This document shows, piece by piece, positions 24,110 to 57,616 of a stretch of 64,000 nt of DNA. The DNA lies in assembly GCA_009103225.1 (NCBI GenBank), contig RHPI01002836.1:1-64000 (forward strand). Direction: 5' to 3'. Numbering within the stretch: position 1 is the stretch's first letter; the number at the start of each line of letters is the position of its first letter. The DNA is from Chlorokybus atmophyticus. Its lineage: Eukaryota; Plantae; Mesostigma and Chlorokybus algae. A model generated the notes under the pieces. The model was not told where the DNA came from, made no database searches, and was given only the letters and a program-made list of their open reading frames with translations. The position numbers and the translations under genes were made by a program.

Positions 24110-24455
24110 GTACACAGCACTGCAGAAGGGAGTGCGCCAATCAGCGGAAACCCTAAAGATGAGTTACAGCAGGGTGTATGATGTAGTTGTGGGTGGAGGC
24201 GGTGATGTGGGCGGAGGAGGAGAGGGAGTCCGTTGGGTCTGCTGGTGCTGCTGCCTCGGCAAAGACTGAGCCGCTGACCAACGGCCGTTGTGTAGGTGAA
24301 CGCATGTGCATGCTTACATGGCTAATGGGGTAGTAGGGGTAGTGTAGTGTGTTAGGTAGTGAATGCACCCGGTGGTCAACCTTACAATGGTGTTGTTGGT
24401 ATGCGCTACGTCACTCTGCATGCTGCTGACTATGAATGCCACTATGCATGTGCAT
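24110..24455 (+). repeat. Dispersed ~350-bp repeat; inverted copy at 55520-55900
   Basis: Alignable blocks ACAGCACTGC..AAGGGAGTGC, AAACCCTAA, GTGGGTGGAGG..GATGTGGGCGGAGG, CAACGGCCGTTGTG, CCCGGTGGTCAACC. Confidence 0.85.
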
Positions 24456-25033
24456 CTCTCTCTCCGTTTCGCATTGTTTGTTCATCAATCAAGGTCGCAT
24501 AATATTGTGACGACCGTACTTACCTCTTGGCTAGTGCATGAGCGGGAATCCCGCGTGCATGAGCAGGGTACGGATTGCGCTAGCTAACGCCAGCTGACGC
24601 CTGAACAAGCCGCGAGGCCCGTGCAGGCGCAGCGGCGCCTGTATAGGTTTTTATTTAGTCTTTCAGGCTCAATTTCGAGTAACCAGCGGTGATGCTCACT
24701 GCCCGCCTGTACATGTGTTTGTTAACCGCGGTCATGCACATTAGCATCGATCGCGTTTAGTTGGTACGGTTATCGGCATATTCTTGTTGACAAATGACAC
24801 TTTTAGGGTTAGGGTGGTGACGGCTCCACAGGCTGTTTCGTAGGCCAATTGGCAGCCGATTGCGTAGGCGAAAGTGCCTCGACGTTTCGGCGGCTCATAT
24901 GTGTCTGTTTTGGGTCGTGTGGCGCATTCGTATTTCTGAAACGTCTTTGTGCTCCTTGGTTGTTGTTGCCGCTGGTGTTGTGTATTATCGTGCTTGAGTG
25001 TAGTTTGGGGTAGGTTTGGGGTAGGTGTTGGCG

Positions 25034-26110
25034 ATGGCCCGCACAAAGCAGTGCAGTCGTCGCGTCGATGGTGCTTACCCGCGTCCTCGGGGTCCTGGTG
25101 GGCGGTTTGTTGTTGGCGCCGCTGCACCTGCTGGCGAAGGTGCAATTGTTGCACATGAGCAAGCCTTGCCGGCTGCGCCCCCCGCACGTCCTCGCCGCAA
25201 GTAAGGAGTTGTCCTAGCATATGTCTTGATATATACTTGTTGGTGATTTGGGTGTTCATGTAGGCCACGCGTTACGCAACCCCTGCGCGAAATCCGGCGG
25301 ATGCAGAAGAGCACCGCTCCGATTATCCCCAGGTTGTCTTTTTGCAAAGTTGTGCGCGGATGTGTTAACGCTCTTCTCGCTGACGAGAAATACGGTATGC
25401 AATTTGTAATTGAATTGTTTGTATTGCATATATACTGAAGCGGTGTTGCAGCTGACGTGTTTCACACACCCACCTTTTGCTGGAGGGCTGAAGCCCTGAG
25501 TGCACTTCAGGAAGCTGGGGAGATGTTTGTTACCGAATACATGCAGGACATGTAAGTTGCGTTGTGTGCTTGTTCATGGTGGCAGGCTTTTGATGATTGA
25601 TGTTTGACATGTTGTGTCAATGATAATCCATAATGATGCAGGAACCTGCTTGCCCTTCATGGTCGTCGGGTCACAATCATAAAGAAGGACAGTGACCTGA
25701 GCAAGGTCTTCCGCGGGGATGCCCTGAACCCCGGCACCGTCGATTTTCACGAGTGGCAAGCCCATGACCCGCGGTACACCAACACTGTCGTCAACCGCCG
25801 TCGCATCATGAAGGCGAAGCTCAAGGACAAGCGCCGCATCCGCAAAGAGCGTCAGCGTGTTGCGAAAGCACGTCGCCGGCAGCGGGCGCTTGACCGCGGC
25901 CAAGAGCCCCCCGAAGAAGTAGCGACGTCTGAGTCTCCGCCTTCATCGGAGGACGATGAAGCAGCATGGCGTCGTAGGCGACGAGGAGTGCAGCGGCGGC
26001 AGGAAGAGATAGAGGAGATCCTGGAGGAGGTGGATCCGCCGGATGCGGAGGTAGACTCTTCGGAGCCGGAGCATGAGGAGCAGTCGGAGGAGGGTAGTCC
26101 TCCGCCTTAG
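25034..26110 (+). CDS. Divergent histone H3/CENH3-like protein, 288 aa, with 130-aa C-terminal extension; exons 25034-25200, 25264-25394, 25452-25551, 25642-26110
   Basis: Spliced translation MARTKQCSRR...PRRKPRVTQPLREIRRMQKSTAPIIPRLSFCKVVR...FCWRAEALSALQEAGEMFVTEYMQDMNLLALHGRRVTIIKKDSDLSKVFRG matches H3 alphaN-alpha3. Three GT-AG introns with consistent phases (2,1,2); 867 nt open to TAG. Confidence 0.9.
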
Positions 26111-26403
26111 TAGCGTGGTTACTGTAGATTACTTTAGAGATTACTATCAATTTTAATTGTTATTAGTTGTAGTCGTGTGGTTGTGCGGCAGTTGTAATTA
26201 CAGATGACGTTTTTGGCTTTTAATGTTATATGTCGCACATATTGTTACTATATTTTTGGCTTTGTGTTGGGCAGGCGCTTTTTACAAATGCGCTTTTATT
26301 TGCAAAACATGCATGAATCATACACCTATCCGGGTTGATGCTGGGGAACCTAGTTGCCACTAATACAGCAAATGCAATGCGTTGTCTAATGAGGAGGCGA
26401 CAT

Positions 26404-27594
26404 TTACTTCATGATGTCGTTTCGCTTGAACATCCACCCTTGGCGAGTCTTCGGTGGTGCTCCTACCAAGGTATTCAAGTTGGGCACTCCTTGACGACGC
26501 AGCTTCAGTGTCAGCGTGGTTTCTGCCGCATCAATTTCTGCTTGCAAGTCGTAGGAACCCATCACCTCCATGGTGACTTGTTTTTTAAACGGGGCATCTA
26601 TCAACACATCTTTCATTGTTTTGGGCGGTTTACATGCGTGTTGGGTGAACCGTTGGTGGGGATGAATGGATTGCCCCACGTACACACCACCTGACAATTC
26701 GTGATTATTGTTTGTGTTGTAGCAGGGTATGTTCAAGTTGCACATGCGTATTGTACCTATTGGTGTATGCGTCAGTTTGTAAAGGTGGTACTGCTGGCTC
26801 CCACGCTGGATCTGGTGTGTGTTTTTTTGGTGGCGGGCTCTGCGGTAGTTGGTGTTACCGTGGACATGCTTGATTGCGTTGGGACGGTAGATGGCGAAGC
26901 AATGTCGCAGCAGTCCTGGAGATAAGTCCTCATTTGTCTCTGACGTTGTGGTGTCAGCGTTGATCCTTCCTTTTCAGCGACTTTCTCCAGTGCGTCAATG
27001 ATCTTGGCTGCCTCTTCTTGAGTCAAATGCTTGCACTTTTCCCACGTTGCCGCTTTGTACTCAGATAATTTCCAACAGCTGCACTGACTGGATGACCCTT
27101 GTCTTTCCGTCGCGCTCGAGTTCCCGGTTCATGATCTCGCTGAGCGCCTTGAACGCGTCGTACCTATTCATGTTGGGGCCGAATTGCTTGCCAAACTTGG
27201 CGAAGAAGTATTTGGCGGATCCTGATGCACGACCTTGTTAGATCATCACTGGGGTGTTACCAAGAGCAGTAGCAATTTGCAACTTTGTAGTTATCACAAA
27301 CTTGGTATGAACGTGTGGTTTATTACCTGTAGGTGCGCCGACTTCCTGTTGATTTTTGCGCTTCCAATCCTTTTCGTTCTGTCTTGCTTTTGTGATCATG
27401 CGGTCGATGTCGGTGTAGGAACTGTCGTAGCGATCATAGTATTCCTCCGGTAAGTACCCAAGGCTGTCCAGCAACCGCCGCTGGTTGACAGTCAAAGGTA
27501 GCGGCTCGTCCCTCAACGGAGTGTCCGTTGCCGGATCAGGGTCGTCGAGCTGCTTGACCGCAGCCTCGAACGCAGCGCTGAAGAGGTCAGCCAT
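26404..27594 (-). pseudogene. Helitron-associated gene: short helical repeats followed by a GIY-YIG endonuclease (spliced, with frameshifts)
   Basis: ATG at 27594 (MADLFSAAF) follows a 5'UTR intron. Splicing ATAG|GT..CAG|GT gives YHLYKLTHTPIG-GVYVGQSIHPHQRFTQH...AAE...PNLN (GIY/YIG, Arg, Glu, Asn). Confidence 0.7.
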
Positions 27595-27989
27595 CTGTGT
27601 CGCACAGGAAGTTAATGCTCTGCCACAAATGGCACGCGACGTTTCAAAACACTTACTGCTTCTCGACGGCGCCGCTGCCTGGCCTGTCTGTTCTAAAATG
27701 GTGGTGGTTTCGCTGCCGCCGCCGCCGCCGCCAAAGCCGCGGCCTACCACAATTGCTGCGACTGGAGTGGTCGATTGCTTTATGCGATTGTCCGCGCCGC
27801 CGCGCCAATCCGCGGCCTATTACAACGGTGTGATAGGTCGATGGCCTTATCCATTCATGGCGTTACGCATAACGTTAGGTCATGTAGTTAGCGTTATATA
27901 TACGTTCTTCGATCTTTCTGCGTATATGCATATTGGCATATTTACATGTATGAACGTTTCGCAGCAGGCCACGCGCATCTTGCAACGTG

Positions 27990-30900
27990 TTAGACGCGTT
28001 CGTTGCTCTGAAACGTCTGTGTCGGTGTTAAATCTTGCGGTGCGGGCAATTCTTTCAACTTGAGGTAGGATCTGTGTGTCACCCTTGACAGCGCTACATA
28101 CCACATGCCAGAGCAGAAAGCGTGCTGAATGTCGACGAATGCGGTATGTGCAATGGTCATTCCTTGACATTTGTGAGCGATGACAGCATAGGCCAGTTGC
28201 ATAGGGAATGTACATTTGAAGTACGTTTGCCTTGTGTCATAGCAGTATTTTCGGTCGCTGCGGGTGACCCGGACTATGCGATCAATGTCATGCAATTGCA
28301 CGTGGATTGCCTTCATGTCAGCTAGCAACGAATCTGGATCTAATTCAATGGCGGTGACAGTACCGGTGGAGCCGTTTGTGATGCCCCGACGGGTATCTGA
28401 TTTCATGAACAGTACACGTGCACCAATGCACACCGATTGCATGTGGTGGAAGTTAGGTTCTTCCAAAAACTGCAGAATTCTTGTGTCTATTGTGTTGTCA
28501 GGGCAGTTGTGTTTGATGTTAACTTTTGTAATGACCGCATCAGGGCATATTTTTTGCAATATGAGATGGTTGTATACCATTGTGTGTCGACAACATGGGA
28601 ACAAATGACCATGATTTCTCCTGGAGTCTGTAAGACGGTTTGGAAATCACAGACGCACGATGCTAAGACTTCTCTTATTTGTTCGCTCGAAGGAATAGCG
28701 TGCCGGATTTGCGAAAGAAATTGCGCGAAGTGCGGATCCTGTTCTTGTTGGATAGAACTTGTCAGATGCATAACTTTTGCATCAGTCCACCAATGACTGG
28801 TCGTGATTTGACATTGTAGGCATGGTTTAACTCGATGATGGCATACGGCTGGCAGCTGGTGCATGTCACCGACTAGAATCACTGTGACCATTTCCAGTAT
28901 AGTCATAAATGCATGCACGGTTTGCATGCGATGCATAATCAGAACGTTCTGCTTGTGAGCATCGAGAATTCGTCTATAATCAGCACGTCCATAGTTGCAA
29001 TGCCCAAGTACGCTGCATCGGTCGGGTACAATGTGCTCATAAAGCCATCATTGCGAAAAGGCAATTTAAAGGCGCTATGAACTGTGGTGGCTGCAGGATG
29101 TATTCTTTTTGCTGCAGCTCCGGTGCTAGCGGTCGGGAACACATGTTTTCCGTGGCGTGCATAATGTGATGCGAGTGTTTTAATCATATGTGTTTTGCCA
29201 CTACCCGGAGTGCCGCTAAGAACATACAATCCTTCACCACTATTGATTATGTCGTTGAATATTGACCGTTGTGAGCCCATCAAGTTGTCGGCAGTGTACA
29301 TATTAAAGTCACGTTCAAACATGTTTGTATCATCGGTATCTGTGATTACGTCAATCGAAGATGGTATAGGTGTCGTATGCATGTTGTGCATTCTTTGTTG
29401 AATGATGTTCGACAACAATTCGCCATCGACCTCTTTTTGCAGATGCCTTTGTGTATACTGATGCAAGTGCTCATCAATGTTGTCGACATCCACTATTCCT
29501 CGAGTAATGCATTCTTGTAAACAATCAGCGTTTTCAGATGGTTGTGTTTGATTCTCCGTTCGAAATGGAACCTTTTGCAATAGCACATTGTAAAAATACG
29601 CTTGCATGTGATGTGTTGGATGATAATCGGTAAACCTGATTATTTTGGGCTGGCATAAGCGATACACATATTTCGTGGTGGTGTGTATGGTGACACCCAT
29701 GAAGTCAATGTACTTGTTTGTGGAATGGTCAGATTGGATCGTAGCATGCGTTTTGCTGTCGACACAACCGTATTCTCGAAAATAATCATAAAACGTAACG
29801 TGTTTAAGTGAGGCTGGCCGTGCGCAATACTTGTCTACGTTATGTTGATTGGCGCCACGACCTATGTTTATCACGCGGAATTGTCTGGGTCTTGAATCCA
29901 AGTATTCCACAGATGATGACATATGCACTATTGGTATATTGAGTAATACCAAAGCTGCTTCCGCAGGGCTCACAGGTTTCGACATGTACAGCGCTGACGT
30001 AACGCGCAGTTCGGCGTCGATCATTTCTTTTAAACCCAAACACCGTGCAGCATCAGGATTGAGATTGAGTTTACCAAATGGTTCAGACTTAACTGCGTAT
30101 TTCAACACGTAATATGACCATGCCTCATGGCATATGCGTTGTAAATTGACGTGCGCGCCCCATAATAACGCGATAGCGGGGTGGCATGGTACTACATTGC
30201 GATCGCAATGGCGGGGACGATAATATAAATAGCGACGTTGATGCGCATCGTACTTACAAGTGTCGGTGTGTACAGCAAATGGAAACCCATATTGGCATGG
30301 CCCTTGTTTCCGACAACCATCTTCGCGACATGTATGCCTCCATTTTGTTATGATATGGTCAAACAACTTTTGTTGTATCAGATCTTGCGGACGTATGAAT
30401 CTGTTTGTTGCTGAGTCTACATCTGCAGGAACCATTGCTGTAATCTCGTTGCTTACGCGGTTGACATCTTGTGGAGCGACCCACAGCATAATATGTGCAT
30501 GTACAGATCCGCGGTGCTGTACCTCATAACGCAACACGTGATGCTGCACTTCGCCCAAAATACCTTTGCCCAATATGAATTGTTTTAAAAACTTTGTGCA
30601 TCTTTCCTGAAATAGTATCGCTCCTTCTACGGGACAATCACGCCATGTCATGTTCGAATTGATCGATTGCACAACATTTTTGAGATGATCAAACTCTGCC
30701 CAGCGTGACGACGACACCTCGTAAGCCGTTAAAGTCAGGAATAATGAAGGTAGACCCCAATGATTGACTAACGTCACAACATCCATCAATTGATTCTTGT
30801 GCCATAATGGCGACTGTGGCACTGTACTGGGTATATGATACTTAATAATATTTTGGTACGCCATGTCATCTGTACTGAAGGGATGTTGTTTTTTGTATTT

Positions 30901-32118
30901 GTTAAACTCTTTCTCAATACATACTGTATAGCGCATACTCATAACGCGGCATGCTTGCCGAACTTGATACATCAATAACAAGTATGGTTTGTACAATGTG
31001 TACACCGAAAATAAACAAGAGAGACGATATGACAAATATGTTCCAATGTTGCACGTACCGCTGAAGTCATGCCCGCCAGATGGATATAAGAACGGGAATA
31101 ACGCCATTTCTACGGACATGTTAGCGCTGCGTGTGGTCATGGGAGAAATGAAGAACTCAACTTCTTCTTGCGTATCGCGTTGCATCAAATTTCCAGCAAA
31201 AAGCTTTCCATTGTATTTCAGCGTATTGCGCGATTTTGACATGCTACCCGCTTCAACGGGTACGCATGTAGATATTGCACGATGCATTTCGGTTCCAAGA
31301 TCAACAGCATTGGGGTTACGCACAATATAATGACTTACTAAGCTTGCGATCACATCTACAGTCAACACAACCACTCCGAGATTACGTCGTGGCTGTTCCA
31401 TCATTGTGCGATAGTATTTAACATACACATTCTGCGCTAGCATTTCGCATAAGATATCTTGCAAAACTGTGGCATGCCCATCTAATAGCAAACTATTATC
31501 TGACCATTGTATTAACGGACCAGTAAAGACGGATTCAACGTCAATGCCACCATGCGTGTAACCATAATTGTGGTATTGTTTTTGCAGACTTAGTCTCGTG
31601 TTTAATAAAGATAACATCTTGATGTGCAAGGGCTCTGAAATTTACAGGCGTTTGATATGTCGGGGCGTAAATGCGCTTAAAAACTCTGTTTTGCAATCAT
31701 GTTTACGATGATTGCAAAACACGAGACTAAGTCTGCAAAAACTTAGTCTCGTGTTTTGCCGTATATATCTATCCATATACAGATTGACTAACAAATACGG
31801 AGGGTGTGTAAGGTTGGCAAACGGTCGCACCTTGGTGTGCGTGCCATCATTGCTGATTTGCACACGCCCGCAACACCAGCAACACAACATCAACACGAAA
31901 GTTTGGTTACAAACGGCCGTCCACGACTTTAATTGCATGGAAAACAACGCATGTGATACAGTTGCCATACACTGCAACAATAACGTACTCATAGTTCTGA
32001 CGTGCAAGAAACACCGTCGTTTCGGACGATACAGGGCCTTCAAGTTTCTCTCCCAAGCGCCATACAGCTTCCGAATCGTCTGCGCCACCGCCGCGCTCAA
32101 TCCGCGCCAGGCGCACAA
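27990..32118 (-). pseudogene. Helitron RepHel (HUH Rep plus PIF1 helicase), with stop/frameshift
   Basis: 896-aa ORF 28939-31629: PSLFLTLT (Rep1), YEVQHRGSVHAHIMLW (Rep2), YVLKYAVK (Rep3), GTPGSGKT, STGAAA, IIDEFSM. Downstream ORFs: VGDMHQLPAV, NGSTG, FPMQLAYAVIAHKCQG, YVALSRV. Confidence 0.95.
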
Positions 32119-32625
32119 GGGTTAGGCAATCAAATCAGCGGCTGACAGCGATGTCTACTGGTATATATTGCTGTTCTGTACCGTCATTAGATGTAGTGCG
32201 ATAGTTTTTGTTAATCTACGACTGTGGGGCCGCCACGCGCCTACCTATACGCGCGTCACGTCCAGACTCAATGTATGACGTATCACGTGTTCCCTACACG
32301 GTAAACAACAAATGGCAAGGCATTAGCGATACCGTCAGCCATTAACGGCACGGGGCCATCGTACTGGAATATAGTTGTACATCACGTACACGGCAAACGG
32401 TAAATGCATTCCTGGTTGAGTTTGTTGCCATTACCGTTCAAGGCACAGTACCATCGTATGGGAGTACAGTCGTACATGGGGTCAACGGCAAACGGTGAAT
32501 ACATTGATGGCTAAGACTAGTGAATTTCGTCGTTTACAGTTAACACGGACGTTCCAGAACAGCAGCCTGCTTGTGCGCGTAATATAAGGCCACTAGTACA
32601 TTTTGAAACGTTACTAGACCCCTAA

Positions 32626-34945
32626 TCAGTCATCACTACATTCTAGTAAACCTTTGCGATACACACGCCGCACAATGTTAATAAATTCTTCTTCGCTCAA
32701 AGTCTTAGTGTAGTCTAACACAAAAGAAGCCACCTGCGCGTTGATGAGATCTTCAGCGGTGTCATCGCGCTTCACAGGCCGTGAGCTCGGTCCACCTTCC
32801 TCTGTCTTGCCTGCGCTTGGCCCAGTAACCACTGTGATGTGTACATTGTGTAATTTAAAACAAACTGGCAATGACTGCCAAAAGCAATAACGCACACACA
32901 CGTTCCATTACAAATACCTTTGAGTGAAGGCGAGGGCAACCTAGGTCTTTTGCGGCAACTTTCAGCAGGAGTGATATGTGGTCGAGGAGTGGGCAACGCC
33001 AGCGAAACCGACCGTGCCTCCAATGTGACGTCTGTAGGCGCGGGCAGGGCCAGGGCAGCTGCATGTGCTCTGGCTGTAGCGGGCAACGTTAGCGTGACCG
33101 GCGGTGCCTCCAATGTGAGGTTTGTAGGGGCGGGCAGGGCCAGGGCAGCTGCATGTGCTTGGGGCTGTAGCGAAGCTCGCTTGCATGATGGCCTGAATGT
33201 CTGGCAACCGCATAGTAGTGCCGTAGTTGCCGGTGTTGCCATGGCAATACAAGAAGTGACCACGTCTAATGAATACCTCGGTCTCCTGTTGCAACCGACT
33301 GACGCGGCAGTCTTGTGCAGCCATACTCCAGACCCAAACTACCCACCGAGCCTCGAATAACTGGAATCAACGATCAACATTACATCTTCAGAACCTTGCT
33401 GAAGGGGGGCGTGCAAGTCGTCATCGCCCGGGACTTCGGCTCGCTGAGGAGCGGCTTCGTCTTCCTAATCGGACTGATCGCTTTCGTCATGAAAAAGATT
33501 CTCTTCTGAGTCGGAGCCAGGGTCAGGAGGGGCGCAAGGTGGTGCTGTCGGCGCCAAGGACATAGCGACATCTGAGGTATACACTAACACTGGAAGACCA
33601 GCGCGTTGGCGACCTACCTGCGAAACATTACTGACAGCAATTATGCCTGCTTCAGCATGCTGTAACAATGTCTACTGTACACAAACTGCGTACCTTCAGC
33701 CACGTCCCACATGCTGGTCTCATCGTGTATGTCTTCGGTGACATCCACACCATCTGCGTCCATGTCGAAAAGCGCACTGAGGCAAGATTTCTTCTTCATG
33801 CCCACCACACAAGCAGCGTTCTCTAAACGCACAAATAGACGCTGATCGCTTTCGCGAAAAAACACCGGAATGGCATTCAAAAACATCTCCGGCGCTTGTG
33901 CTGCGATCAGACAAAATATATAAATTGAACATTCATCGTGACGATGCCCACAATGCTCAACTAGCTGACATGGTGATGCTGTGTCGTCGTCGGTGAAAAT
34001 GTCCCATTGCCCGATCAATGGCTCCATGGCTGCCGGGCAACGCGACCGCCACCAATTAAAGCGGAAAAAAATAATATATTGTGCATAATATGCGTGCAAC
34101 TCTTCACCAACTATTGGTACCTGGCGCATGGAGTGAACTCAGTTGCTACCACAGCATCCATGCTCACATATATCCCTACCTCGCGGCTAGTCAACTGGTT
34201 GCGGATCAGTCGACGAGACACATCAACTCGCTGCTCCTTGAACCATTCCCTCTCATCAGGATCTTCAAAAGGCTTTGAACCACCACGACACCATGTGATG
34301 GCATGGTCACAAAACCTCAGTACAAAAGAAAGATCAATGGTGCGGTTTTCAGGCGCACGCCCTTCCATGACGTTCAAGCAGCGTGTTCATGGCAAAATGT
34401 GTCGTCACATCAGATGACATGAGAACAGCTAGCAAAGCTTTCTCCTCATCAACCCAATGTTTCGCCGCAGGGTGATCACCATAAGCGCTTTCCGCATTCA
34501 CAGCGTTGGCAGCTTGCAAAACGTCAGCAGGTGGCATAAAGGGGAACAACGTACCGTCCACCTACCGAACATGTCATGATGACCAATTGTCATGCATTAT
34601 CACTATGCATTGAATACCCACACAATGTAATTTACCTTGAGGTAATGGTTCACTTCATCGGGTGTCCACCAACGCTCAACAGAAACCCCGACATCCCCCA
34701 CAGCACTTGCGCTTCCATCAACACCTGACATTATTACAAGAACAGGCCTACTCACAACCACCGCAAATATAGCAGTGCATCCAAGCGCCACCACGCCACC
34801 ACCACACTAACGTCCGCCGCCAGATGCACGTTTCGCAAACAACAACACGCCGCACAAGGCATGCTGAGGCCATATACGTTTCCGAAACGTCGAAGCAGAT
34901 TAGGCTGCGACATCGGCTGTGAAATCGACTGCACAACTCGCCCAA
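32626..34945 (-). other. Uncharacterised multi-exon ORF cluster upstream of RepHel (probable Helitron cargo gene)
   Basis: Chain of same-strand ORFs (34603-34794, 34349-34561, 34111-34377, 33641-34129, 32772-33263, 32626-32901) with protein-like composition, an acidic stretch and a 90-bp internal repeat (ALALPAPT x2). No family recognised. Confidence 0.45.
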
Positions 34946-35343
34946 TCGTGACGCGTAACGGTATCCGACACAAAGTCACGCGCGCTTCATAACTGCGTTG
35001 CGTCCAACGTTTCAGAAACGATGACACGCCGCACAAGGCATGCTGAGACGATATGCGTATCCGAAACGTCGAAGCGATTAGGCTGCAGAAAGCGGCTGCG
35101 AAATCGACAGCACACCTCGCCTAATCGTGACGCGTGACGGAATCCGACACAAAGTCACGCGCGCTTCATAATTGCGTTGCGTCCAACAGTTCGAAAACGA
35201 CAACACGCCGCACAAGGCATGCTGAGACGATATGCGTGTCCGAAACGTTGAGGCGATTAGGCTGCAGAAATCGGCTACGAAATCGACTGCACCACTCGCC
35301 TTATCGTGACGCGTGACGGTATCCGACACCAAGTCACGCGTGT
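34846..35343. repeat. 179-bp tandem repeat, ~2.8 copies
   Basis: CACGCCGCACAAGGCATGCTGAG starts at 34846, 35025 and 35204. Confidence 0.95.
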
Positions 35344-35815: not shown

Positions 35816-37291
35816 GTACTATACACGGCGGCGTACTACGCATCACGTGCATCACGCGGCGCGGAAAACTGCGAAATGAAACTGGCAGTGAGCATAATTA
35901 CAGCGTTGGGCCCCAAAGTTCCGAGGAAAACAAGCAATTTTGCAAAGAAGCTCGTAATTCATCAAGTGCACTTCGGGTCACCGATTGCAAGGTTTCCAGG
36001 AAAAAGTAAACAAGTTTAAATTGTCCGGCTAATGATTGCAAATAAACCATGGCTGTCGCTTTAGATAACAACAACACACATTGTTAATGACTGATGGATG
36101 TCACGTTGACACTTTCAAGTGAACACAATAACTTGTCATGGCAGCAAGTCGCGATCAAGTTTCTTCTCAATAAAACATGCATTATAAGCATGCTTGCCAA
36201 GTAGAGCAGCCAATGTAAAAAGAAAATCTAATGCATCTCGATTTTTACGATGCGCAAATGCTTGCGCGTTTCTTGCACATTTAAATATACATAATATCGT
36301 CTTTCCATACATCGCCGATGTCGCTTGTGTACTTACGTATCCTTAAGTAAAGCTGCTTTCTTAAATGAACGCAATAGCAATACGATCGATGGAGAATGTA
36401 TGATATAATACAACTTTGTATATGTTAGCAAGTTGCGGTCTCTTGCAACATCATGCATGTATTTCATCAACACACATTTTTGAAAAAAACATATAAGAAT
36501 CAAACAAATCAAAAGTAAATATGATGCATTTGGGTATATGAGATATGATAGGCTTGCGCGTTTCGCGCATAAGAACAAAACGCTCTCTTGTTGATCTTTT
36601 TAATTAAAACAAGCAGCCAATGTAAAAAATAGATGTGATGTATTTATGCATGTGAGATGTAAAATAGGCTTGCAAGCTACGCGCGCATATATGATGTGTT
36701 CAATTAAGATTGATGCTTATGCATCATAATCTATATACGACTCGAGCGTACAATACCATTATTGTGCCATTAAACGCGGCACATTGATGGTCCGGCTGAT
36801 GTATAGCCCGGCGGCTAAACGAAATCGGTTACGACAGCATAAGTCTCATTATTACGGACAGGGTGTGATTGCTGTTGGTAAGATAGTTTTAAAGATTCTT
36901 TGGGGGTATGGGGTGCCGTCAAACCACGTGCCACCAATGGATACGCGTTTTGTAGGATGCGTTTTGACGCGTAACTACGTTGCTGTGTAACAACGCACAC
37001 GACATTTAAGTCACCGTTTTCGTTCGCCGTTGCCACGTCGCGCCAAAGATTTTCGCGCGGTTTACGTAGCGCTCGGCAACTGCGTTTTCAACGATGCTAC
37101 CGTACAGTTTGTATACAATGTATACAACACGCATTGCGGCATAACTTTTGCGCCATTTTTTGTGTATGGTACCATGTCAACCGACTTTAAAGCATTCTTA
37201 TGACTTTACAAACAGAGTTCAAACCGTTTCAAGTAATGTGCTTATTAAACAAGGTCTTTTAAGACATTTTTGGGCGGTGCAATAGGAGGAT

Positions 37292-38259
37292 TGTAACGAT
37301 ACCACTCACTTACTTGCTGGGCGGCTTGGCAAACGTATGCACAAGCACAAGGACTTACTACTGGAAGCCCTACCAGCGTCACTGGTGCAGTACCTTGCAG
37401 AGGAAGTCACAGCACCGCACCAAGGAAGGAGAGGATGACACCAACCTCTCTACTCAGCTGCCACGGACATCACACCCCACATGGGATGAGAGGGAGAGCC
37501 CCTTGAACAACTAAACTAGGCACCCGACACACAAGAGTCGAGTATGCACATGCTGAGCTGCCTCAACACCTGTTGAGGCCGTTCATATACCCTCTCTTGC
37601 TGCTCTCCGACCTAGAACATCCAAGTCCAAGGCTACATGCCTTGTCATGGCTGCGTTGACCACAACTCATGTCTAGGGCTGCCACATCAGCCCTTGGACC
37701 TCTTTCAACGCCCAAGACTGATCACACATCAGCCTCGGACATTGTAAACGTCCCTAGGCTGGTCACATCAGCCTAGGACATCACACACATCATCCTTGGA
37801 CATTGTGAACGTCCTTGGCTGGTCACATCAGCCTAGGACATCATACTCATGCATACATATGCATCCTTATGCATACATATGCACGCATATGCACACACAT
37901 GCGCATGCATGCATATACATGCATACATTTAGTACATACCTCTCATGCACGCTTATGCACTCATATGCGTACATGTGCACACATATGCAAACACATGCAT
38001 ACACATGCGGACATATGCACACATATGTCTCTGTACATCACATGATGTCTCATCGGCTATGATCAGCCCTGTGCTTGCCATCATGCCTTGTGTAGTTCAT
38101 CATGCTCAAGGCCGCACAGGCTCTAGAGCAGACCTACATGAGAGCACACCCACAAGCACTACACACGCTTGCGTAGTGTGGGTCCCCACTTGGTCTCATC
38201 TTACTTACCACATAAGTAAGGGACAGAGAATGACTTTTGCCTGCCCTGTGGGCGTCACA
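37292..38259 (-). repeat. 3' LTR (968 bp)
   Basis: Highly similar to 43234-44250, which has an extra ~48-bp CA-rich segment. Confidence 0.97.
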
Positions 38260-38511
38260 TTCCTCCCCACTTGCATTGCAACGACCGCGTTGCAAAAGGG
38301 TGGGACACTAGTCCCGCACAAACCACAGCCAGGCTGGCCAGGCCTAACTGAGTGGCAGTGCTTCACGTGAAAGTAGTGCAAGTCGTGGGAGTGACAACCA
38401 ACTCTGATACTGTGTACCAGTGCATGCGGTGTTGGTATGTCACATGAAGATGCTGTGGGCATGTGCACATGCTCCTACAAGCTGAGCATTAGTAGCTCTA
38501 AGCACACGCTC

Positions 38512-41500
38512 TCAAGTGGCACCTGTGGAATTGAGCTCATTATCAAACTCCTCCAACAAGGCAGCACAGTTTGCCAAGTTGGTTTTCGGCTCCCAGGTGT
38601 TATGCTCTTCACCATAACCAAGCCACTTCACCAAGTATTGGATCCGAAAGTTCTTCTTGTACTTTCTGAACCGTTTGCCAACAATGGCCTCGACCTCATA
38701 CTCGAGATCGCACTCAGCCTCAACTGGAGGGGGAGGGGGTTGCACTGGACCGTCACTGTTGTACTGTTTCAGCAGTGCTACATGACACACATTATGTACT
38801 CGCATGCTCTTCGGCAAGTCAAGCCGAAAGGCACGGTCACCAACACTGTCGGTGATGCGGAATGGACCCAGCCATCTTGGTAGCAACTTGCGTACCTCGC
38901 TTGTTTTGAGTCGAATGTTCTTCGAGCTTAACAACACTTGATCTCCAACTTGGAGCTCATCTCCAGGCCTACGTTGCATGCTGGCATACATCTTTTGCCT
39001 GTCTGATGCTGCTCTCGAGCAGTCTTTTGCATGTGCCAACGAGGCATGCATGCTCTTTATGAAGTCTTTAGCCATCGGCACTTTGCTGAATGGCTCGACA
39101 TGCAGAGACATGGGTGTCAACACATGACGACCATAGTTCAGATAGAAAGGAGTGCTTCTTAACGACTCATGCCATGCATTGTTCACAGCGAACTCAGTAA
39201 GTGGCAGATACACATCCCAATCATCGAACCTGGGTGACGTGTAGTGGCGTAGCACATCTTTCAACACCTGATTGACGCGCTCCGTCTGTCCGTCACTCTG
39301 TGGATGGTAAGCAGTGCTCAAGCTCTGCTTAGTCCCCAAGTACCGGCACACAGCCTGCCAGAACTGGCTCACAAACTTGGGGTCACGGTCAGACACCAAC
39401 TCTTTGGGTACACCGTGTGATCTGAACACCGAGTCCACAAAGACAAACGCAAACTCTTGCGCATCAATGTCTGTGCGACAGGGCTCAAATCTGACCATCT
39501 TGGTCAAGCGATCAACAAAGACAACGACAGCACTGTGTCCCTTCTTTGTCACAAGTGGATCTGTGATCAGATCCATGCTCACACTCTCCCATTGATAGTT
39601 AGGAATAGCCAAGGGCTTCAGCAACCCTGCTGGCTTCCTGTGCGAGGCCTTGTCTCTTTGACAATTGTCACAACACGCGACATATTTAGATACATCAGCA
39701 CCCAAGCTTGGCCGCTAATATTGTCGCTGCAGCTGCTTGATGGTCTTTGCCATTCCCATGTGCCCACTGTACACGGAATTGTGTGCCTCAAATAGACACT
39801 CTTGCCTCAAGCCGAGTGCATTTGGCACTATAAACTTGCCCTCACGGTACCGTAAGCCCTTGTGACAAGTGACCTTGTCGTCTGCCTGCTTCAGCAACTC
39901 AACAAACCATGTGTCAAGTGCATAAGCACTAGGCAAACGCTGTATGATGTTTTCCACATCAACGGCCATTGGGTCCTCCCCACTTGGCTCGTGCACTATC
40001 AATGGTGCTTCACTGTCTGCTCTCTCGAGCTCAGTTGGCATCTCGCTGGTCTGTTGCCATTGGTGTCTAAGTGACAGCTTGCTCATGCACAGATGGCAAC
40101 TCGAAAATACTGGCACTAGCATCACCTGCTTGTGCCCACCCTTAGCTTCATGCACGTGCACGTGTTGTCACTGCCAACAGCAATGGCGAACGGCTCAAAG
40201 GGTCTGCCACATTCACTCTCCCTGGTCTGTAAACCCAGGTAAAGTGAATTTAGACAAATACTCAGCCCACCTCGCTTGTCTTCTCGATAAGGTTGGTTGG
40301 GTCTAAAAGAAAACAAGGGGGTTGTGGTCCGTGATCACACTAAACCCGCCTTCCACCCCCTCTAGATAGCAACGCCACTCTTGTAGCGCATGGACTACCC
40401 CCAACAACTCTTGCTCAGTTGTTGTATAGTTTCTCTCAGCAGGAGAGAACTTCTTGCTAGCATAAGCAAGGGGGTGCCCANTCTCTCAGCAGGAGAGAAC
40501 TTCTTGCTAGCATAAGCAAGGGGTGGCCCACTCTGGAGCAACACAGCACCAGTGCCTTTACCAGATGCATCACACTTTACCTCAAAGGGCTTGGTGAAGT
40601 CCGGCAGCTGTAGCACAGGCGCTGTCACCATAGCCTCTTTAATGGACGCAAAGGCTTCTTGCTGCCTCTGTGACCACCTCCACACGACCTTGTCACGCAA
40701 CAAATCAGTGAGAGGGGCAACACGCGATGAGTAACCCCGAATGTACTTGCGGAAGTAGTTGCTCAAGCCTAAGAATGCGCGCAGCTCGTGCACATTCTTG
40801 GGACTAGGCCAATCCTTGACCTTGGCAACCTTCCTTGGGTCAGGGCGCACGCCCTCCTTGCTCACAATGTGCCCGAGGAACTCCAGTTTATTCTTGCCAA
40901 ACTCGCACTTGGGCATGTAAGCATAGAAACGGTGCGCACGCAGCGTTTTCAACACCTCGCGCACTTGCGCGACGTGCATGTTAGCATCCTTGCTGAACAC
41001 AAGTATATCATCAAAATATACAGCACTGTTTTCCCGATCAGCTTGTGAAACACACCGTTCATCATAGCTTGAAAGGTGGCTGGCGCATTCGTCAGACCAA
41101 AAGGCAGCACTTTGTACTGAAAGTGTCCCACACGCGTTCTGAACGCTGTCTTGGGCACATCTTCCGGTGTGATCCGGATCTGATGGTACCCACTGAGTAG
41201 ATCCAAGGAGCTGAACACTGAGGCACCGCTTAGTTGATTAAGCAAATCATCTATCCTTGGCAGCGGATACCTGTTCTTGATGGTCAGCTTGTTCAAGGCC
41301 CTATAGTCTACGCACATGCGTAGCCTGCCGTCCTTCTTAGGTACGAAAAGAATGGGTGCTCCGAAAAGAGAGCTACTTGGCTCAATCAATCCCTTCTCAA
41401 GCAAGGCCTTGATCTGCCCCTCCATGTCCGCATACTCAGCTGGACTTAGCCTATACACAAGTCTGAACGCAGGCTGCGCATCAGACTCTAGAGGGATCGT

Positions 41501-42139
41501 ATGCTAGACGTCCCTCTCAGGTGGCAATGCAGGCAGTTCAGCTTGAAACACATCAGCAAATTCGGACAACAGACCTTCAAGGGCCGTGTCTGGTGGCTTG
41601 CCACCGGTCTCACCAACTGAGGTGGAAGTGTCGTCGTTGCCGACCGGCCGGACGAGCACTAGAAGAGGTTGAGCTCCATGGCGAACAGCCCTCTTCACCT
41701 GCATGGCACTCAACAAAGAACATAAGACATCTGTACTTGATGCATCATCAACAAAGCTAACAGTGGGCGCAACATTGTGCCCATATGCATGCAAGGTCAC
41801 ACGACCTCGACCTTTGCGTACACTGCAAAGTTTTGTGTCCGCGTCTGTGCGCAAGCCACATGTTTGCTCCCAGTGGCTGCCAACAATGACATCCACGCCT
41901 GACACCTCTACTGGGATGACCAAGAACTTGAGCTGAGCATGATAGCCTTGCACACGCACAGACAAGCGTACAACTCCCCGCACGGGGATCTCAAGCTTGT
42001 TCAAGGCAACAACCGTGTCATCACACTTGCTGGCACGAATGCCTAAGCGTCGCACAAGAGATTCACTCACGAAGTTCTCAGGTGTGCCCATGTCTATCAT
42101 CAAGATGCACGGCACATGCGCAACAGAAGCCTTGAACAA
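38512..42139 (-). pseudogene. Chromovirus pol: PR-RT-RNase H-IN-chromodomain, with stops and frameshifts
   Basis: IDMGTPENFVS (PR); [34 protein letters not shown] (RT); DASGKGTGAVLLQ (RH); VFVDRLTKM, SDRDPKF, HPQSDGQTER (IN); YEVEAIV..YLVKWLGYGEEHNTWEP (chromodomain). Confidence 0.95.
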
Positions 42140-42586
42140 TCAAGTCAAGTCCAGAGTACTTACCTCATGGATGGCAGGGGGGTCATACAACACACGCATC
42201 TGCCCCTTACCTAGCTTGACCTCTCCCAGGACCTGCATGCCTTTAACAAAGCGGGTCCACAACCCAGGACGCTTGGGTACAACCACGCATGCACTTGTGT
42301 TGTGCGCACTCTTGCTCTTGCAATCCACATAGTGCTTGAGCATGTTTGACAACTCGTCCACGGGTGCATTGAGCAAGACACACTTGCCTGCACATACGTG
42401 CTGCATAAATTTAGTATCTACCTGTGCACCCAACTCGTTCTCCCACACAGCGACATTGCATGGTTGGGGAAGGCGTGACATCAAGTCATTGAAAGCACAA
42501 TGCGTATCAACGTCCACAGAGCAGCTAGCCATTGGCAATCCCTGTTGTATACATGGCTTCTTGCTCTCTTCATGTCCCTCATACAT
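42140..42586 (-). pseudogene. Dam-like (N6-adenine methyltransferase-like) domain upstream of, and in frame with, the protease
   Basis: FMQHVCAGKCVLLNAPVDELSNMLKHYVDCKSKSAHNTSACVVVP resembles the NPPF-type motif IV region of retroelement Dam-like domains. One stop separates it from PR. Confidence 0.55.
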
Positions 42587-43233
42587 GAGAGCATGGCCCC
42601 GAGCAGCATCAGCTTCAGCTTTACTGAGCTGTGCTTCACGGCTACGCTTACGCTCTCGGTGGTTCTGTACACTTGCATTAACAGATGCACCAACATGTCC
42701 CTTACTTGGGATTGCACAGTCAACGATGTCACTTGACCGTTGCCATTGAGCTATGTTGGCCTCATGCTATTGCTATAACTCTGTTACCTGCTCACGCAAC
42801 GTGGCAACCAAAGTGGTAAGCTGTCGGATGGTCTTAGCAACATCATTGCCCCAAGATACCTCCTCTCTTGCTGTATGCTCTTGCTAAGCCATTGCCACAA
42901 AGGTTAGGGCCAATACCACAAGGTGAGGTCTTTGTAACAGATGCACTCACGCGCACACGCGCGCACACGCGCAGCTGGTGCAGCAACAAGCCAATGCGTG
43001 TGTAATGCTGTGTATGTGCAGCAAGAACACACAACCAATGCTCAGCGTGTAGAACGACCCACACCGTGCATGCAAGTGTGCACGCAGCTGGACGCACCAA
43101 CTAGCATGCACAATCAGCTCAAAACCCTGCCATATAGTGCGTGCAAGCAAAGAATGCAACGCACGCACGGTGCAGCAAGTGCATGAGCTGATGGGCAAGC
43201 ATGCAAGGCTTGGAATGCAAGCTCCGAGTCCAC

Positions 43234-44250
43234 TGTAACGATACCACTCACTTACTTACTGGGCGGCTTGGCAAACTTATGCACAAGCACAAGGACTTAC
43301 TACTAGAAGCCCTACCAGCGTCACTGGTGCAGTACCTTGCAGAGGAAGTCACAGCACCGCACCAAGGAAGGAAAGGATGACACCAACCTCTCTACTCAGC
43401 TCCCACACACTCACACACTCAAGCACACCTCACACACATGTGCAAAGCTGCCACGGACATCACACCCCACATGGAATGAGAGGGAGAGCCCCTTGAACAA
43501 CTAAACTAGGCACCCCACACACAAGAGTCGAGTATGCACATGCTGAGCTGCCTCAACACATGTTGAGGCCGTTCATATACCCTCTCTTTGCTGCTCTCCG
43601 ACCTAGAACATCCAAGTCCAAGGCTACATGCCTTGTCATGGCTGCGTTGACCGCAACTCATGTCTAGGGCTGCCACATCAGCCCTTGGACCTCTTTCAAC
43701 GCCTAAGACTGATCACACATCAGCCTCGGACATTGTAAACGTCCCTAGGCTGGTCACATCAGCCTAGGACATCACACACGTCATCCTTGGACATTGTGAA
43801 CGTCCTTGGCTGGTCACATCAGCCTAGGACATCATACTCATGCGTACATATGCATCCTTATGCATACATATGCGCGCATATGCACACATATGCGCATGCA
43901 TGCATATACATGCATACATTTAGTACATACCTCTCATGCACGCTTATGCACTCATATGTGTACATGTGCACACATATGCAAACACATGCATACACATGCG
44001 GACATATGCACACATATGTCTCTGTACATCACATGATGTCTCATCGGCTATGATCAGCCTTGTGCTTGCCATCATGCCTTGTGTAGTTCATCATGCTCAA
44101 GGCCGCACACGCTCTAGAGCAGACCTACATGGGAGCACACCCACAAGCACTACACACGCTTGCGTAGTGTGGGTCCCCACTTGGTCTCATCTTACTTACT
44201 ACATAAGTAAGGGACAGAGACTGATTTTTGCCTGCCCTGTGGGCGTGACA
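43234..44250 (-). repeat. 5' LTR (1017 bp)
   Basis: TGTAACG...GTGACA followed by TSD AGGAT. Confidence 0.97.
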
Positions 44251-46094: not shown

Positions 46095-48480
46095 TCAAAG
46101 TAGACTGCACCCTGGGCCTTGCATCATCGACGCCAAGTCTATGATGCAAGGCTTCGCGCCAGCAGGTGTGTTGATGTGGGTTGGACCTGCTCTTGCCACC
46201 GCGGCTGCTATGCTAGCAGCTTGGCCTGCTTGGCAGTCTCCTTCTCTGCCTTGGCAGCTTCCCTCTCTGCCCTGGCAGCTTCCTTCTCGATTCTCACCTG
46301 CTGCTTCTACCATGCCAACACCTCTCGCTGGGCTGCCTTCTCCACACGGAGTGCTGCAGTCAACTCCTTCACCCAGGCCAATTCCTGCTTGTTGTTGGCT
46401 GCCGCCAGCTTGCGCGCCTCAACAGCAGCCTTCTTCCCTGCAAGCTCAGCCTTCTTTGCTTGCAGGGCCTTGATGTATCCCTCTGATGTCAGGCACAAAG
46501 AGCCCTGGATCTGTGGAGCCTTGGTCTTCTTCTGTTGCCAAGCAGAAGGTTCTGCCTGATTCTGCATGACCCCGAAGTTGATTTTGGTGGTGTTGGCACC
46601 AGCAGCAGCAGCAGCCCCCACTGCAGGTGGATCCGTGTTTACGTTGATGTTGTAGTTGTTGTTGTTGTTGGCGATGTTGACATTGTTGTGGTTGACAATG
46701 CTTGGCATCACAGGCTCAGGAGGATCATTCTCCTTGTCGCTGGTGCTCTCCTCATCTTCTGTGGCATCTGCGTCAGCCTCCTCGTCAACAGGCATAGGCA
46801 CTCCTTGACTATCCAACACTGGGCCTCCAAAATTCATGCTGCATTTGCGCGTGCGCCAGGTCAGGTGTGATGTCCTTAGCTGCTGGTTTGGGAAGCTGTG
46901 GCACCTTGTCGTCCAAGGCATGCGTGTTTACTAGCTATATGCCTGCCAAACCCACACATGGTTAGGTGGGCCACTTCTTACAATGCATGTAACACTTGCA
47001 TGTTGCTCTACCTGTCTTTTTGAAGCCACTGATGATGTTGGCAGGTGTCATGGCGAGGTAAAAGGGCTTTGCTGTTAGCTCAATGAGCTTCAGCTTGGTG
47101 ATTGGGCAGGTGGGATGCTCTACTCGCCACTTGAGGAACTCTGATCGGTAGTGCTGCTTGAGCGCTTTGAAGCATCTCACATCCAGTACCTAAAAGGTAA
47201 GAGACACAGCAGCATCAGCATACAACCACTCAGCCACCTTAGTTGACAACTCTCACTGCATTGCACCCACTTACCTGCATAAGGTGTGTCATATGCGCTG
47301 GGAAAGTATGGTGACCCCATTGTCCCGTGCCATCTCCAGCAACTCATGATTCATGCGTAACGAACGGCCGTCCAGCAGCAGAAGGACAAGCCTGGAGATG
47401 CTGGCGCCACTAGGTATGTGTTCCAAGAACCTTTTAAACCAGTCAACAAACAACTCGAGTGTCATGTACGCATTCTCTTGCATACGCATGAAGGCACCTA
47501 GTGGGCCAGCCTGCACATAATTCGCAGTGAAGCGTGCCCCCTTGAGGATGTACATGGGAGGCATCCAGTTGCCAGCAGCGCTCACGCACGCCATCATGCT
47601 AATGTGTTCGCGACTGCCAAACTGGTTGTAATAGAAATTTTTGTACCCCTTCTTGCAAATCACCTTGACAGCTCCTGCCATGCAGCCTGTTGTCATCACC
47701 ACCCTACTGAAACTAACAGCAAAACGTGATTGTGTACAGCAACATACCAAGGTTATCTGGCTCAAAGCCAGTCTCGTCCGCATTGAAGATGCGTGAGGGA
47801 TCATCAATGCCCAACTCCTCCAAAGTCCTGACGTACAAGTCGAAGAAACCCTCCACATTCTCCCTTGTGCAAGCTTGCCACCTCCTCCTATCCAGACCCT
47901 CAGCAACTCTGCATGCCAGCTGGTGTCTTGTCATGAGCAAGCGCAGCCACTTGTAGCCAGGGCAGCCAGCGACACCAAACCTCTTCAGCCGCTTCTTAGG
48001 ATCAGCCTTCAGCATATATTTACCACCTGTGGCCACCACATCCTGGTGAGACACATGCACACTGCACATACACACACACTTGCACTTGCACTTGCACACA
48101 CACATGCGCACACACAGACTTCACCTTCTGAAACAAGGCTGGGCAAGTAACACCAAAGTTGTTGTCAGCACACCAGTTGATCCACCTCACCAGCTCCGTC
48201 TCTTCTGCACCAGTCATCACCGGTGGACGCCCACTAGGAGTGCGAAGCTGCAGCTTCTCAGGAAAGTGCATGTAGTCATAAGGGTGGACTTCGCAACGCC
48301 ATGGGTGGCAGCAGATATTATAAGCCCCATCCCAGCCTTGACGTCATCTACAGCAATTGCCATCTTCAACAGATGGCTCTGGCCCTTGGCCCCCCAGTTG
48401 ATGTAACGTATACCCTTGCGCCTGGTTGTGCCCAAGCAGCTGCGTATAGCAGCTTTGCTGCGCCCCCTGAAGCGTTTACA
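46095..48480 (-). pseudogene. pogo/Fot1-like (DDE_1) transposase with spliceosomal introns, frameshifted
   Basis: psq-like HTH (MAI..DVKAGMG..SAATHGVAKSTL), CENP-B HTH (GRPPVMTGAEETELVRWI), IFNADETG, HISMMACVSAAG..PPMYILKG, LLLLDG, PAHMTHLMQ|VLDVRCFKALK, IISGFKKTG. TIRs not found. Confidence 0.85.
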
Positions 48481-55234: not shown

Positions 55235-55519
55235 ACCAGTCGTTCAGGCAATTAGGGATGCAGGTGAATGTGTGCATGTGTTTCCGTGCAGGAGGCATGG
55301 AAGCTTGGTTGCAACTGCACCCAATTCCAATGCGTAGCAGATTGCAGTAGCAAGACCCGACGTGCACGATATGTACAGATTGATATTGATTTCTCACAGA
55401 ATGAGATGGTGCGCATTTCTGAACTGTGATTGCTAGATTGTTATAACAGCGACCATGATTAGCTTATGGAAACCAACCAGCAGGCGACATATGTGTATGT
55501 ACATACAATTCAAAACGGC

Positions 55520-55900
55520 AATGCACATGCATAGTGGCATGCACAGTCAGCAGCATGCAGAGTGACATAGTGCATACCAGCAACACCATTGTCAGGTTGA
55601 CCACCGGGTTCATTCACTACCTCACACGCTGCACTATCCCTACCACCTCGCCATGTAAGCACGCACATGCATTTGCGTTCACCTGCACAACGGCCGTTGG
55701 TTAGCGGCCCAATCTTAAAGCCGAGGCAGCAGCAGCAGCAGCAGCAGACCCAACGGACTCCCCCTCCTCCGCCCACATCACCACCTCCACCCACAACTGC
55801 GTCATACGCCCTGCTGTGGCTGCGACGTTAGGGTTTGCGCCCATTGGCGCGCAGCAAGCATACGCACAGCACGTAGCACTCCCTTTTCGCAGTGCTGTGT
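55520..55900 (-). repeat. Inverted copy of the dispersed repeat at 24110-24455
   Basis: See 24110-24455; contains a (CAG)n run. Confidence 0.85.
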
Positions 55901-56325: not shown

Positions 56326-57150
56326 TTACGTGCCAGAAACAAGGCACGCCCCATTCCACTGAACACACTCATCTTCGCAGTACTGCTTGCCAGCGAGCGT
56401 AATGTCGTGCGTGCTGGGGGCGGTGGGATTAGTTTCAAAGGCGATAACCGACCTGAACTGCCCGTACTTCATCATTTTGTCCTTCATGTCGAAACATGCG
56501 GAGAACTCGCTGCACCCGCACAATTTGCCTGATCTTTGTAGGGGGCAACACGTGGCGAGGATGCGCCACGAGACGCAACCAGTGTTACTAATGTCATGCA
56601 GCCAGTTGATGGGTTGGCTTCTCAGCTGGACTCGAGCGAATTTGTAGTCACACGTACACACAATGAACACCTCTGGTCTCGCATTCTTCCCCACTTCATA
56701 AACGGAACCAATGCCGGACCAATGTCGGGTTGCTAACTTGAGCCTCCTCACGCCTTTCGGGTGCACGTGCGGGACCACATTGCGCCCTTTCTCCCCATGT
56801 GCCTTTCTCTTCTCGTTCATCTCATCCTCCTGCAAACTAGGAACAAGAATAACCTCCTCCCCTTTCTCAATACGCAAAAGGCCACCTATGCATCCTTTGA
56901 AACATGAGCTATAGCACCCGCGCACAACATCCTTGATGCCACCTGCCTGGTACGAAGGCCACGTTGTGTCATAGTATCTCTCTTTCACCTCATCAGCAAG
57001 CTGCATCCATGTTGTGTTCACGCAGTTCAAGGATGCCAAGCCCCGTGGACACAACTTGTCGATGACCAGAGCCAGGAAGTGAGGATTGTCAGGGACTGCA
57101 GGGTGGGCGCTCGCGGTGTGAAGACGGCGAGACAACGACCTTGTGCGCAT
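56326..57150 (-). CDS. Intronless 274-aa ORF with an N-terminal F-box-like motif
   Basis: PDNPHFLALVIDKLCPRGLASLNCVNTTWMQLAD fits F-box spacing (LA...CV...W..LA). The ORF is open to a stop at 56326; the rest is unrecognised. Confidence 0.5.
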   Translation of the reverse strand: MRTRSLSRRLHTASAHPAVPDNPHFLALVIDKLCPRGLASLNCVNTTWMQLADEVKERYYDTTWPSYQAGGIKDVVRGCYSSCFKGCIGGLLRIEKGEEVILVPSLQEDEMNEKRKAHGEKGRNVVPHVHPKGVRRLKLATRHWSGIGSVYEVGKNARPEVFIVCTCDYKFARVQLRSQPINWLHDISNTGCVSWRILATCCPLQRSGKLCGCSEFSACFDMKDKMMKYGQFRSVIAFETNPTAPSTHDITLAGKQYCEDECVQWNGACLVSGT

Positions 57151-57314
57151 GGCTGAAGAGAATGTGTTAAGACAACGAATCAGAAGTGTACGTGCGTGCG
57201 TGAGCATGTGTGTGGGCAGGTGGGGAGAGGGGCGTGAGGGTGTGGGGGAGCTTGCGTGTGAGGAACGCGCGCACACACACGCATGCACGAGACGCAGTTG
57301 CGAAGGCACACGCG

Positions 57315-57616
<302 letters not shown>

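Follow-up and report, generated by a model that had tools for sequence, protein, structure and literature searches.

A probable CenH3-type histone H3 variant gene adjoining a Helitron-like element in Chlorokybus atmophyticus

Virus-encoded histones are intron-less, are often fused into doublets and package viral DNA. Transposons, for their part, are known to acquire chromatin readers and enzymes, and in Dothideomycete fungi hAT transposons have captured and amplified canonical histone H3 (PMC6710886). Captured domains have also been described for Helitron-like elements of the HLE2 type, among them GIY-YIG in HelenSM92 of Sphagnum and SET in a proto-Helentron of Phytophthora, and the main text of that survey names no histone among the captured domains (PMC11417382). 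In the literature searched we found neither a Helitron-borne nor a CenH3-type transposon histone. Precisely such a gene, a CENH3-like histone apparently carried by a Helitron, had been proposed for the present locus in an earlier, sequence-only reading, which regarded it as undescribed. The claim of novelty holds for the CenH3 type and the Helitron-like carrier, for which we found no precedent, but not for a transposon-borne H3 as such, as this is already known from the fungal hAT elements.

The locus resides in a 64-kb window, by which we mean the entire stretch of 64,000 nucleotides that was analysed. Here, a four-exon gene for a probable CenH3-type H3 variant sits tail-to-tail with the GIY-YIG gene of an element encoding a Rep-helicase (RepHel), surrounded by further transposons. 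Below we describe the gene, its neighbourhood and its other copies, and weigh how it may have come to be there.

A four-exon gene with an H3 fold

The H3-like gene is composed of the following parts:

25034-25200, plus strand: exon 1, coding for the N-terminal tail
25264-25394, plus strand: exon 2, coding for alphaN, alpha1 and the first part of loop 1 (Pfam Histone positions 36-66)
25452-25551, plus strand: exon 3, coding for the remainder of the lengthened loop 1 together with alpha2 (equivalent to the CATD), with W at the F84 position (Pfam Histone positions 74-97)
25642-26110, plus strand: exon 4, coding for alpha3, alphaC and a 130-aa extension (basic helix followed by acidic tail), with the stop codon

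Joined, the exons make up 867 nt and an open frame of 288 aa, which begins with MARTKQ and terminates at the TAG of 26108-26110. The introns, of 63, 57 and 90 nt, follow the GT..AG rule in all three cases, with GTAAGG, GTATGC and GTAAGT as donors, and have a GC content of 33-40% versus 52-66% in the exons. Joining and splice sites thus bear out the uninterrupted MARTKQ protein that had been read from a four-exon GT-AG join, and the gene is confirmed as real and intact. A chance open frame was also considered and rejected, because H3 matches run colinearly over three exons, splicing signals are canonical and GC content differs between exons and introns. None of the RNA runs that were searched for the gene contains it. 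Exact look-ups of the exon 4 frame and of the neighbouring GIY-YIG frame retrieved no record from the protein collections, indicating that this genome is absent from them.

The complete H3 fold claimed earlier is upheld by several comparisons. The Pfam Histone family (PF00125), a search with which had been suggested as a check, matches the exon pieces colinearly at the profile positions given above, and Pfam, PDB matches and H3 alignment place alphaN, alpha1, alpha2 and alpha3 in H3-type order across exons 2-4. Canonical H3, used as a tblastn query against the 64-kb window, finds this locus alone (E 7e-8) and no second H3-like copy, while the spliced protein aligns to canonical H3 over 127 columns, 35% of them identical (E 2e-19). 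The ESM Atlas provided weak histone-fold leads alone, with a best score of 0.78. Residues of the H3-H3' four-helix bundle are retained in the alignment (H113, D123, L126 and the RG near the end). The N-terminal tail keeps K4 and is devoid of equivalents of K9, K14, K18, K23 and K27.

The deviations from H3 are concentrated at positions of relevance for centromeric variants. The alignment to H3 contains one insertion, of 11 residues, placed in loop 1 between alpha1 and W84, which is far longer than usual in CenH3. Moreover, Q68 is replaced by C, F84 by W and T107 by M, and HRYRPGT of H3 has become KPRVTQ. The alignment hence reproduces what the sequence-only reading had singled out, namely the Trp in place of F84, the lost Q68, a loop 1 that exceeds that of H3 by 11 aa and the KPRVTQ substitution. 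The RVT motif retains its Thr (T118), as does that of CENP-A, and for this reason we take the '118' printed in the published CenH3 criteria as the 107/108 position. Read in this way, these criteria demand that the H3 residues Gln68, Phe84 and Thr107 (printed as positions 69, 85 and 118) are absent (PMC4359364). In the protein described here all three are lost, and loop 1 is longer than that of H3, as is also demanded of CenH3. Both MARTK at the start and the W-x-AEAL-x-ALQEA motif are likewise found in plant CENH3.

To which H3 type the fold is closest was judged from the ranking of PDB matches piece by piece, exon by exon. For exon 2 (alphaN, alpha1) the best match is H3.2 with 23 bits, next to 21 bits for Cnp1. 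For exon 3 (loop 1, alpha2) CENP-A reaches 17-18.5 bits versus 12.9 bits for H3.3, and the best ten PDB matches all contain CENP-A, two of them as H3.1/CENP-A chimeras. For exon 4 (alpha3) Cse4 attains 17-22 bits and H3 13.7-14.4 bits. Residues, loop length and these rankings support the assignment of the gene as a putative CenH3-type histone H3 variant.

Beyond alphaC the protein continues for 130 aa, and composition as well as modelling agree with the basic helix and subsequent acidic tail that had been described. The basic stretch spans residues 183-219, with 19 K+R in 37 residues, and is followed by an acidic, Ser-rich tail at residues 220-288 with 24 D+E. Single-sequence AlphaFold predicts two helices, a long one at residues of approximately 176-217 with a pLDDT of up to 92, and another at approximately 236-262. 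Relatives of the extension and exon 4 were sought by word-indexed search, yielding none; among 1.84 billion protein representatives no relative of the extension was detected, a histone concatemer matching exon 4 through alpha3 only, and the JGI metagenome contigs likewise contained no relative of the extension or exon 4.

The Helitron-like neighbourhood

Several of the features surrounding the gene are best understood together with a run of reads from another sample, here called X1, which behaves as low-coverage DNA, its contigs running through intron 1. From left to right the neighbourhood comprises:

24134-24485: unrelated dispersed repeat, with an inverted copy at 55497-55850 and high depth in X1
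24831-24947, plus strand: promoter-like module, ending 90 nt short of the H3-like start codon, about 110 nt of it homologous to the units at 34766-35303
26193-26202: palindrome TGTAATTACA, reading TGTAA on both strands, inside the 293-nt spacer
26404-26973 (ORF also given as 26404-26745), minus strand: last exon or ORF of a GIY-YIG nuclease gene (Pfam E 3e-4)
27993-32121, minus strand: RepHel gene (Helitron_like_N and PIF1-type helicase), with two frameshifts
32600-34731, minus strand: gene X, in several open segments, likely ATG near 34731, no Pfam match
34766-35303, minus strand: 179-nt unit repeated three times in tandem, partial units following up to 35616

The RepHel gene displays the arrangement of a Helitron-type protein, a Rep (HUH) part followed by a helicase, as judged from Pfam matches to Helitron_like_N (E 2.5e-19) and then PIF1/AAA_30. 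It is interrupted near 28942 and near 28581. Relative to the window, X1 contigs of 95-96% identity have 4 extra nt behind 28942 and lack 2 nt at 28581, and when both changes are applied the open frame grows from 900 to 1217 codons. As both frameshifts coincide with X1 indels, the RepHel copy in the window is, judged by its reading frame, dead, with sister copies that are open at both sites and may still be functional. RepHel relatives elsewhere share the same domains at no more than 40% identity (32-40%). In one of these distant relatives, L001, a homologous GIY-YIG ORF (E 8e-12) lies downstream of RepHel, so that the order RepHel-then-GIY-YIG is conserved. Pfam found no match in the L001 ORFs past GIY-YIG, and within 10 kb of the four relatives L001-L004 there is no H3-like sequence, which fits a lineage-specific acquisition.

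The H3-like and GIY-YIG genes converge, and their stops are separated by 293 nt, in keeping with the roughly 290 bp of tail-to-tail spacing that had been estimated. The palindrome TGTAATTACA in this spacer lies downstream of both genes, 83 nt from the stop of the H3-like one and some 200 nt from that of the GIY-YIG one, and its TGTAA (UGUAA) matches the green-algal poly(A) signal. The two convergent genes share this palindrome as a putative signal.

At the outer ends, the 179-nt units before gene X have an inverted homologue in the module before the H3-like gene, and the last unit ends approximately 97 nt upstream of the likely gene X ATG. A profile HMM built from the three right-hand units alone recovers the H3-side module (E 6.2e-8) and nothing else outside the repeat region. 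Blastn gives E 5e-8 for module against units, and their local alignment scores 37 compared to 21.3 +/- 2.2 in shuffles, about 7 SD. The inverted modules therefore bracket the H3-like, GIY-YIG, RepHel and X genes over approximately 10.5 kb, meaning that the two outermost genes are read inward from related promoter-like sequences.

To the left the region is limited by the unrelated dispersed repeat of 24134-24485, and to the right by an LTR element, likewise unrelated, that starts at 37292. Since the former ends at 24485, the left end of the H3-like unit falls between 24486 and 24830. Helitron termini were sought by hairpin and inverted-repeat searches, which returned chance-level 11-12-mers alone. 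The sole candidate for such a terminus, a 12-mer inverted pair at 24692-24703 and 35884-35895, itself lies within chance expectation (about 0.7) and has no T-T flanks.

The rest of the window consists of transposons, namely a chromovirus, a DDE_1 ORF and another integrase. The chromovirus-type Gypsy LTR retrotransposon occupies 37292-43990, with LTRs approximately 92% alike and ORFs for protease, RNase H, integrase and chromodomain on the minus strand, while the DDE_1 (pogo/Tigger-type) transposase fragment is located at 47289-47906 on the minus strand. A microsatellite-like array with a period of 8 nt (57239-57630) is found inside a 441-codon minus-strand frame at 56326-57651, which has no Pfam match. 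Gene X contains a 90-nt tandem repeat (32988-33172) that codes for a repeated Pro/Gly/Ala-rich peptide. The 5' region of RepHel contains, shortly before the long ORF, two perfect hairpins with 14-bp and 19-bp stems (31687-31759), and a 26-nt inverted match (31578-31603 with 31717-31742).

Other copies and the origin of the gene

In X1, exon 1 with intron 1 and exon 4 are each present in versions of approximately 99% and approximately 91% identity, and the 3' flank, as far as about 26282, in a version of approximately 93%. The H3-like gene, introns included, is consequently multi-copy. One of the approximately 91% copies has suffered a 1-nt deletion, and hence a frameshift, in exon 1. Coverage at 95-100% extends over the H3-like block to about 26357 and resumes with RepHel from about 27737; across the eight consecutive depth bins between, no X1 contig of at least 85% identity matches 26358-27736, the GIY-YIG gene. 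X1 thus holds other copies of the H3-like and RepHel blocks, and no contig joins the two. The GIY-YIG segment may have been replaced, or be much more divergent, in other copies, and the gap also allows that H3-like and RepHel blocks are separate units there.

How did the gene arrive at this position? The account we favour, with a probability of roughly 0.55, is transduplication: a CenH3-type gene, introns included, would have been copied at the DNA level into the cargo position of a Helitron-like element, some 11 kb in size, and amplified along with it. On the minus strand the element would read gene X, RepHel and GIY-YIG, with the H3-like gene beyond GIY-YIG, transcribed convergently from a promoter-like module of its own that is an inverted relative of the gene X repeats. 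The present copy of the element is dead on account of the RepHel frameshifts, with the histone frame still open. Capture from the host, membership of the element, expression and a function of whatever kind are what we infer. In favour of cargo speak the direct adjacency to the GIY-YIG gene of the RepHel element and the inverted modules, absent elsewhere in the 64 kb. The proposal that a Helitron carries the gene is accordingly plausible and partly supported, by adjacency, by the inverted modules, by the palindrome in the spacer and by the further copies, but termini were not found and no X1 contig links the H3-like and RepHel blocks.

These same gaps feed a rival view, in which the H3-like gene merely adjoins a dead Helitron and forms a unit of its own, be it a different mobile cassette or one of a dispersed family of host H3 variants residing in DNA rich in transposons. 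No termini were found that would enclose the gene, X1 covers the H3-like and RepHel blocks without the GIY-YIG segment between them, and the distant RepHel relatives are without an H3-like gene. The composition also differs, with a GC of 61% in the H3-like coding sequence versus 43% in RepHel, which counts against proof of cargo. What such a unit would leave unaccounted for is the homologous module in inverted orientation before gene X, beyond RepHel and nowhere else in the window, as well as the spacer of 293 nt to GIY-YIG with its common palindromic TGTAA, and we consider this view possible although doubtful. It is very improbable that the gene instead represents the working single-copy CENH3 of the host, situated in a nest of transposons. 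Such a gene would be expected to have the intact frame, diagnostic CenH3 residues and clean splice sites observed, but X1 contains more than one version of it, the 130-aa extension and the 11-residue insert in loop 1 are atypical for CENH3, and the surroundings are transposons throughout the 64 kb.

A further objection disputes function alone and is compatible with capture, and its probability is hence not to be added to those of the other readings. According to this objection, the gene is a decaying, inactive passenger, a transduplicated pseudogene that is open by chance, as for the H3 of hAT elements in fungi (PMC6710886). The dead RepHel and the frameshifted copy of approximately 91% in X1 are congruent with such decay, as is the published precedent. 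An open frame of 867 nt is moreover of no significance when about 3.7 kb of RepHel contains two indels. Against decay, all fold-critical motifs, the splice sites and the 288 codons are intact. We place the passenger slightly below an even chance, decay and function being about equally likely.

If the cargo gene of the favoured account is expressed, its protein would be predicted to pair with H4 through the H3 fold and to replace H3 in nucleosomes. As the tail is without K9 and K27 while loop 1 and alpha2 are of centromeric type, the likeliest benefit would be a changed chromatin state on or near the element, permitting escape from silencing based on H3K9 and H3K27. Alternatively, the protein might steer the element to centromeric or heterochromatic DNA. 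Nucleosomes of its own, targeting of centromeric chromatin and an acidic tail acting as built-in chaperone, all raised in the sequence-only reading, may be envisaged on the same footing. In a bolder and, to our judgement, unlikely version, the Helitron-like family would have a modular cargo position for chromatin proteins, often occupied by a working CenH3-derived histone, the outcome being variant nucleosomes on the element or in its vicinity that could not be methylated at K9 or K27, or centromere targeting.

Relation to known systems

Should the favoured account hold, and rolling-circle elements carry and diversify an H3 variant of centromere type with a novel tail, a selfish element would act on chromatin in a new way, by supplying a nucleosome subunit itself. 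This would bear on the origin of CenH3 duplicates and on the links between transposons and centromeres. Were the copies merely decaying passengers, the locus would represent one more case of gene capture by a Helitron.

Compared with CenH3/CENP-A, the protein is alike in its H3 fold, in the longer loop 1, in the loss of Q68, F84 (to W) and T107, and in alpha2 and alpha3 that resemble CENP-A and Cse4 more closely than H3. It departs from them in the C-terminal region, where a short tail is the rule and an extension of 130 aa is found here, in a loop 1 that is 11 residues longer than that of H3, and in its genomic setting, since CenH3, which sits at centromeres and recruits the kinetochore, is normally one essential gene while the gene described here is multi-copy among transposons. 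The Helitron-like elements of the HLE2 type agree in having RepHel with a downstream GIY-YIG and, if the H3-like gene is cargo, also in carrying chromatin-related genes.

Virus-encoded histones, as of the Marseilleviridae and other giant viruses, offer the parallel of a selfish element that encodes a nucleosome protein (PMC9145170). In contrast to them, the present gene has three spliceosomal introns and CenH3 features of host type, and an origin from a giant virus was rejected as unlikely on these grounds. Closest in kind are the H3 genes of hAT transposons in fungi, where a DNA transposon has multiplied a gene of the H3 family and many copies are inactivated (PMC6710886). In that system the cargo is a canonical H3 coding sequence, the carrier a hAT element, and copies have been destroyed by RIP. 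In the present one the probable cargo is of CenH3 type, has introns and an additional tail, and adjoins a Helitron-like element, and at least this copy is intact.
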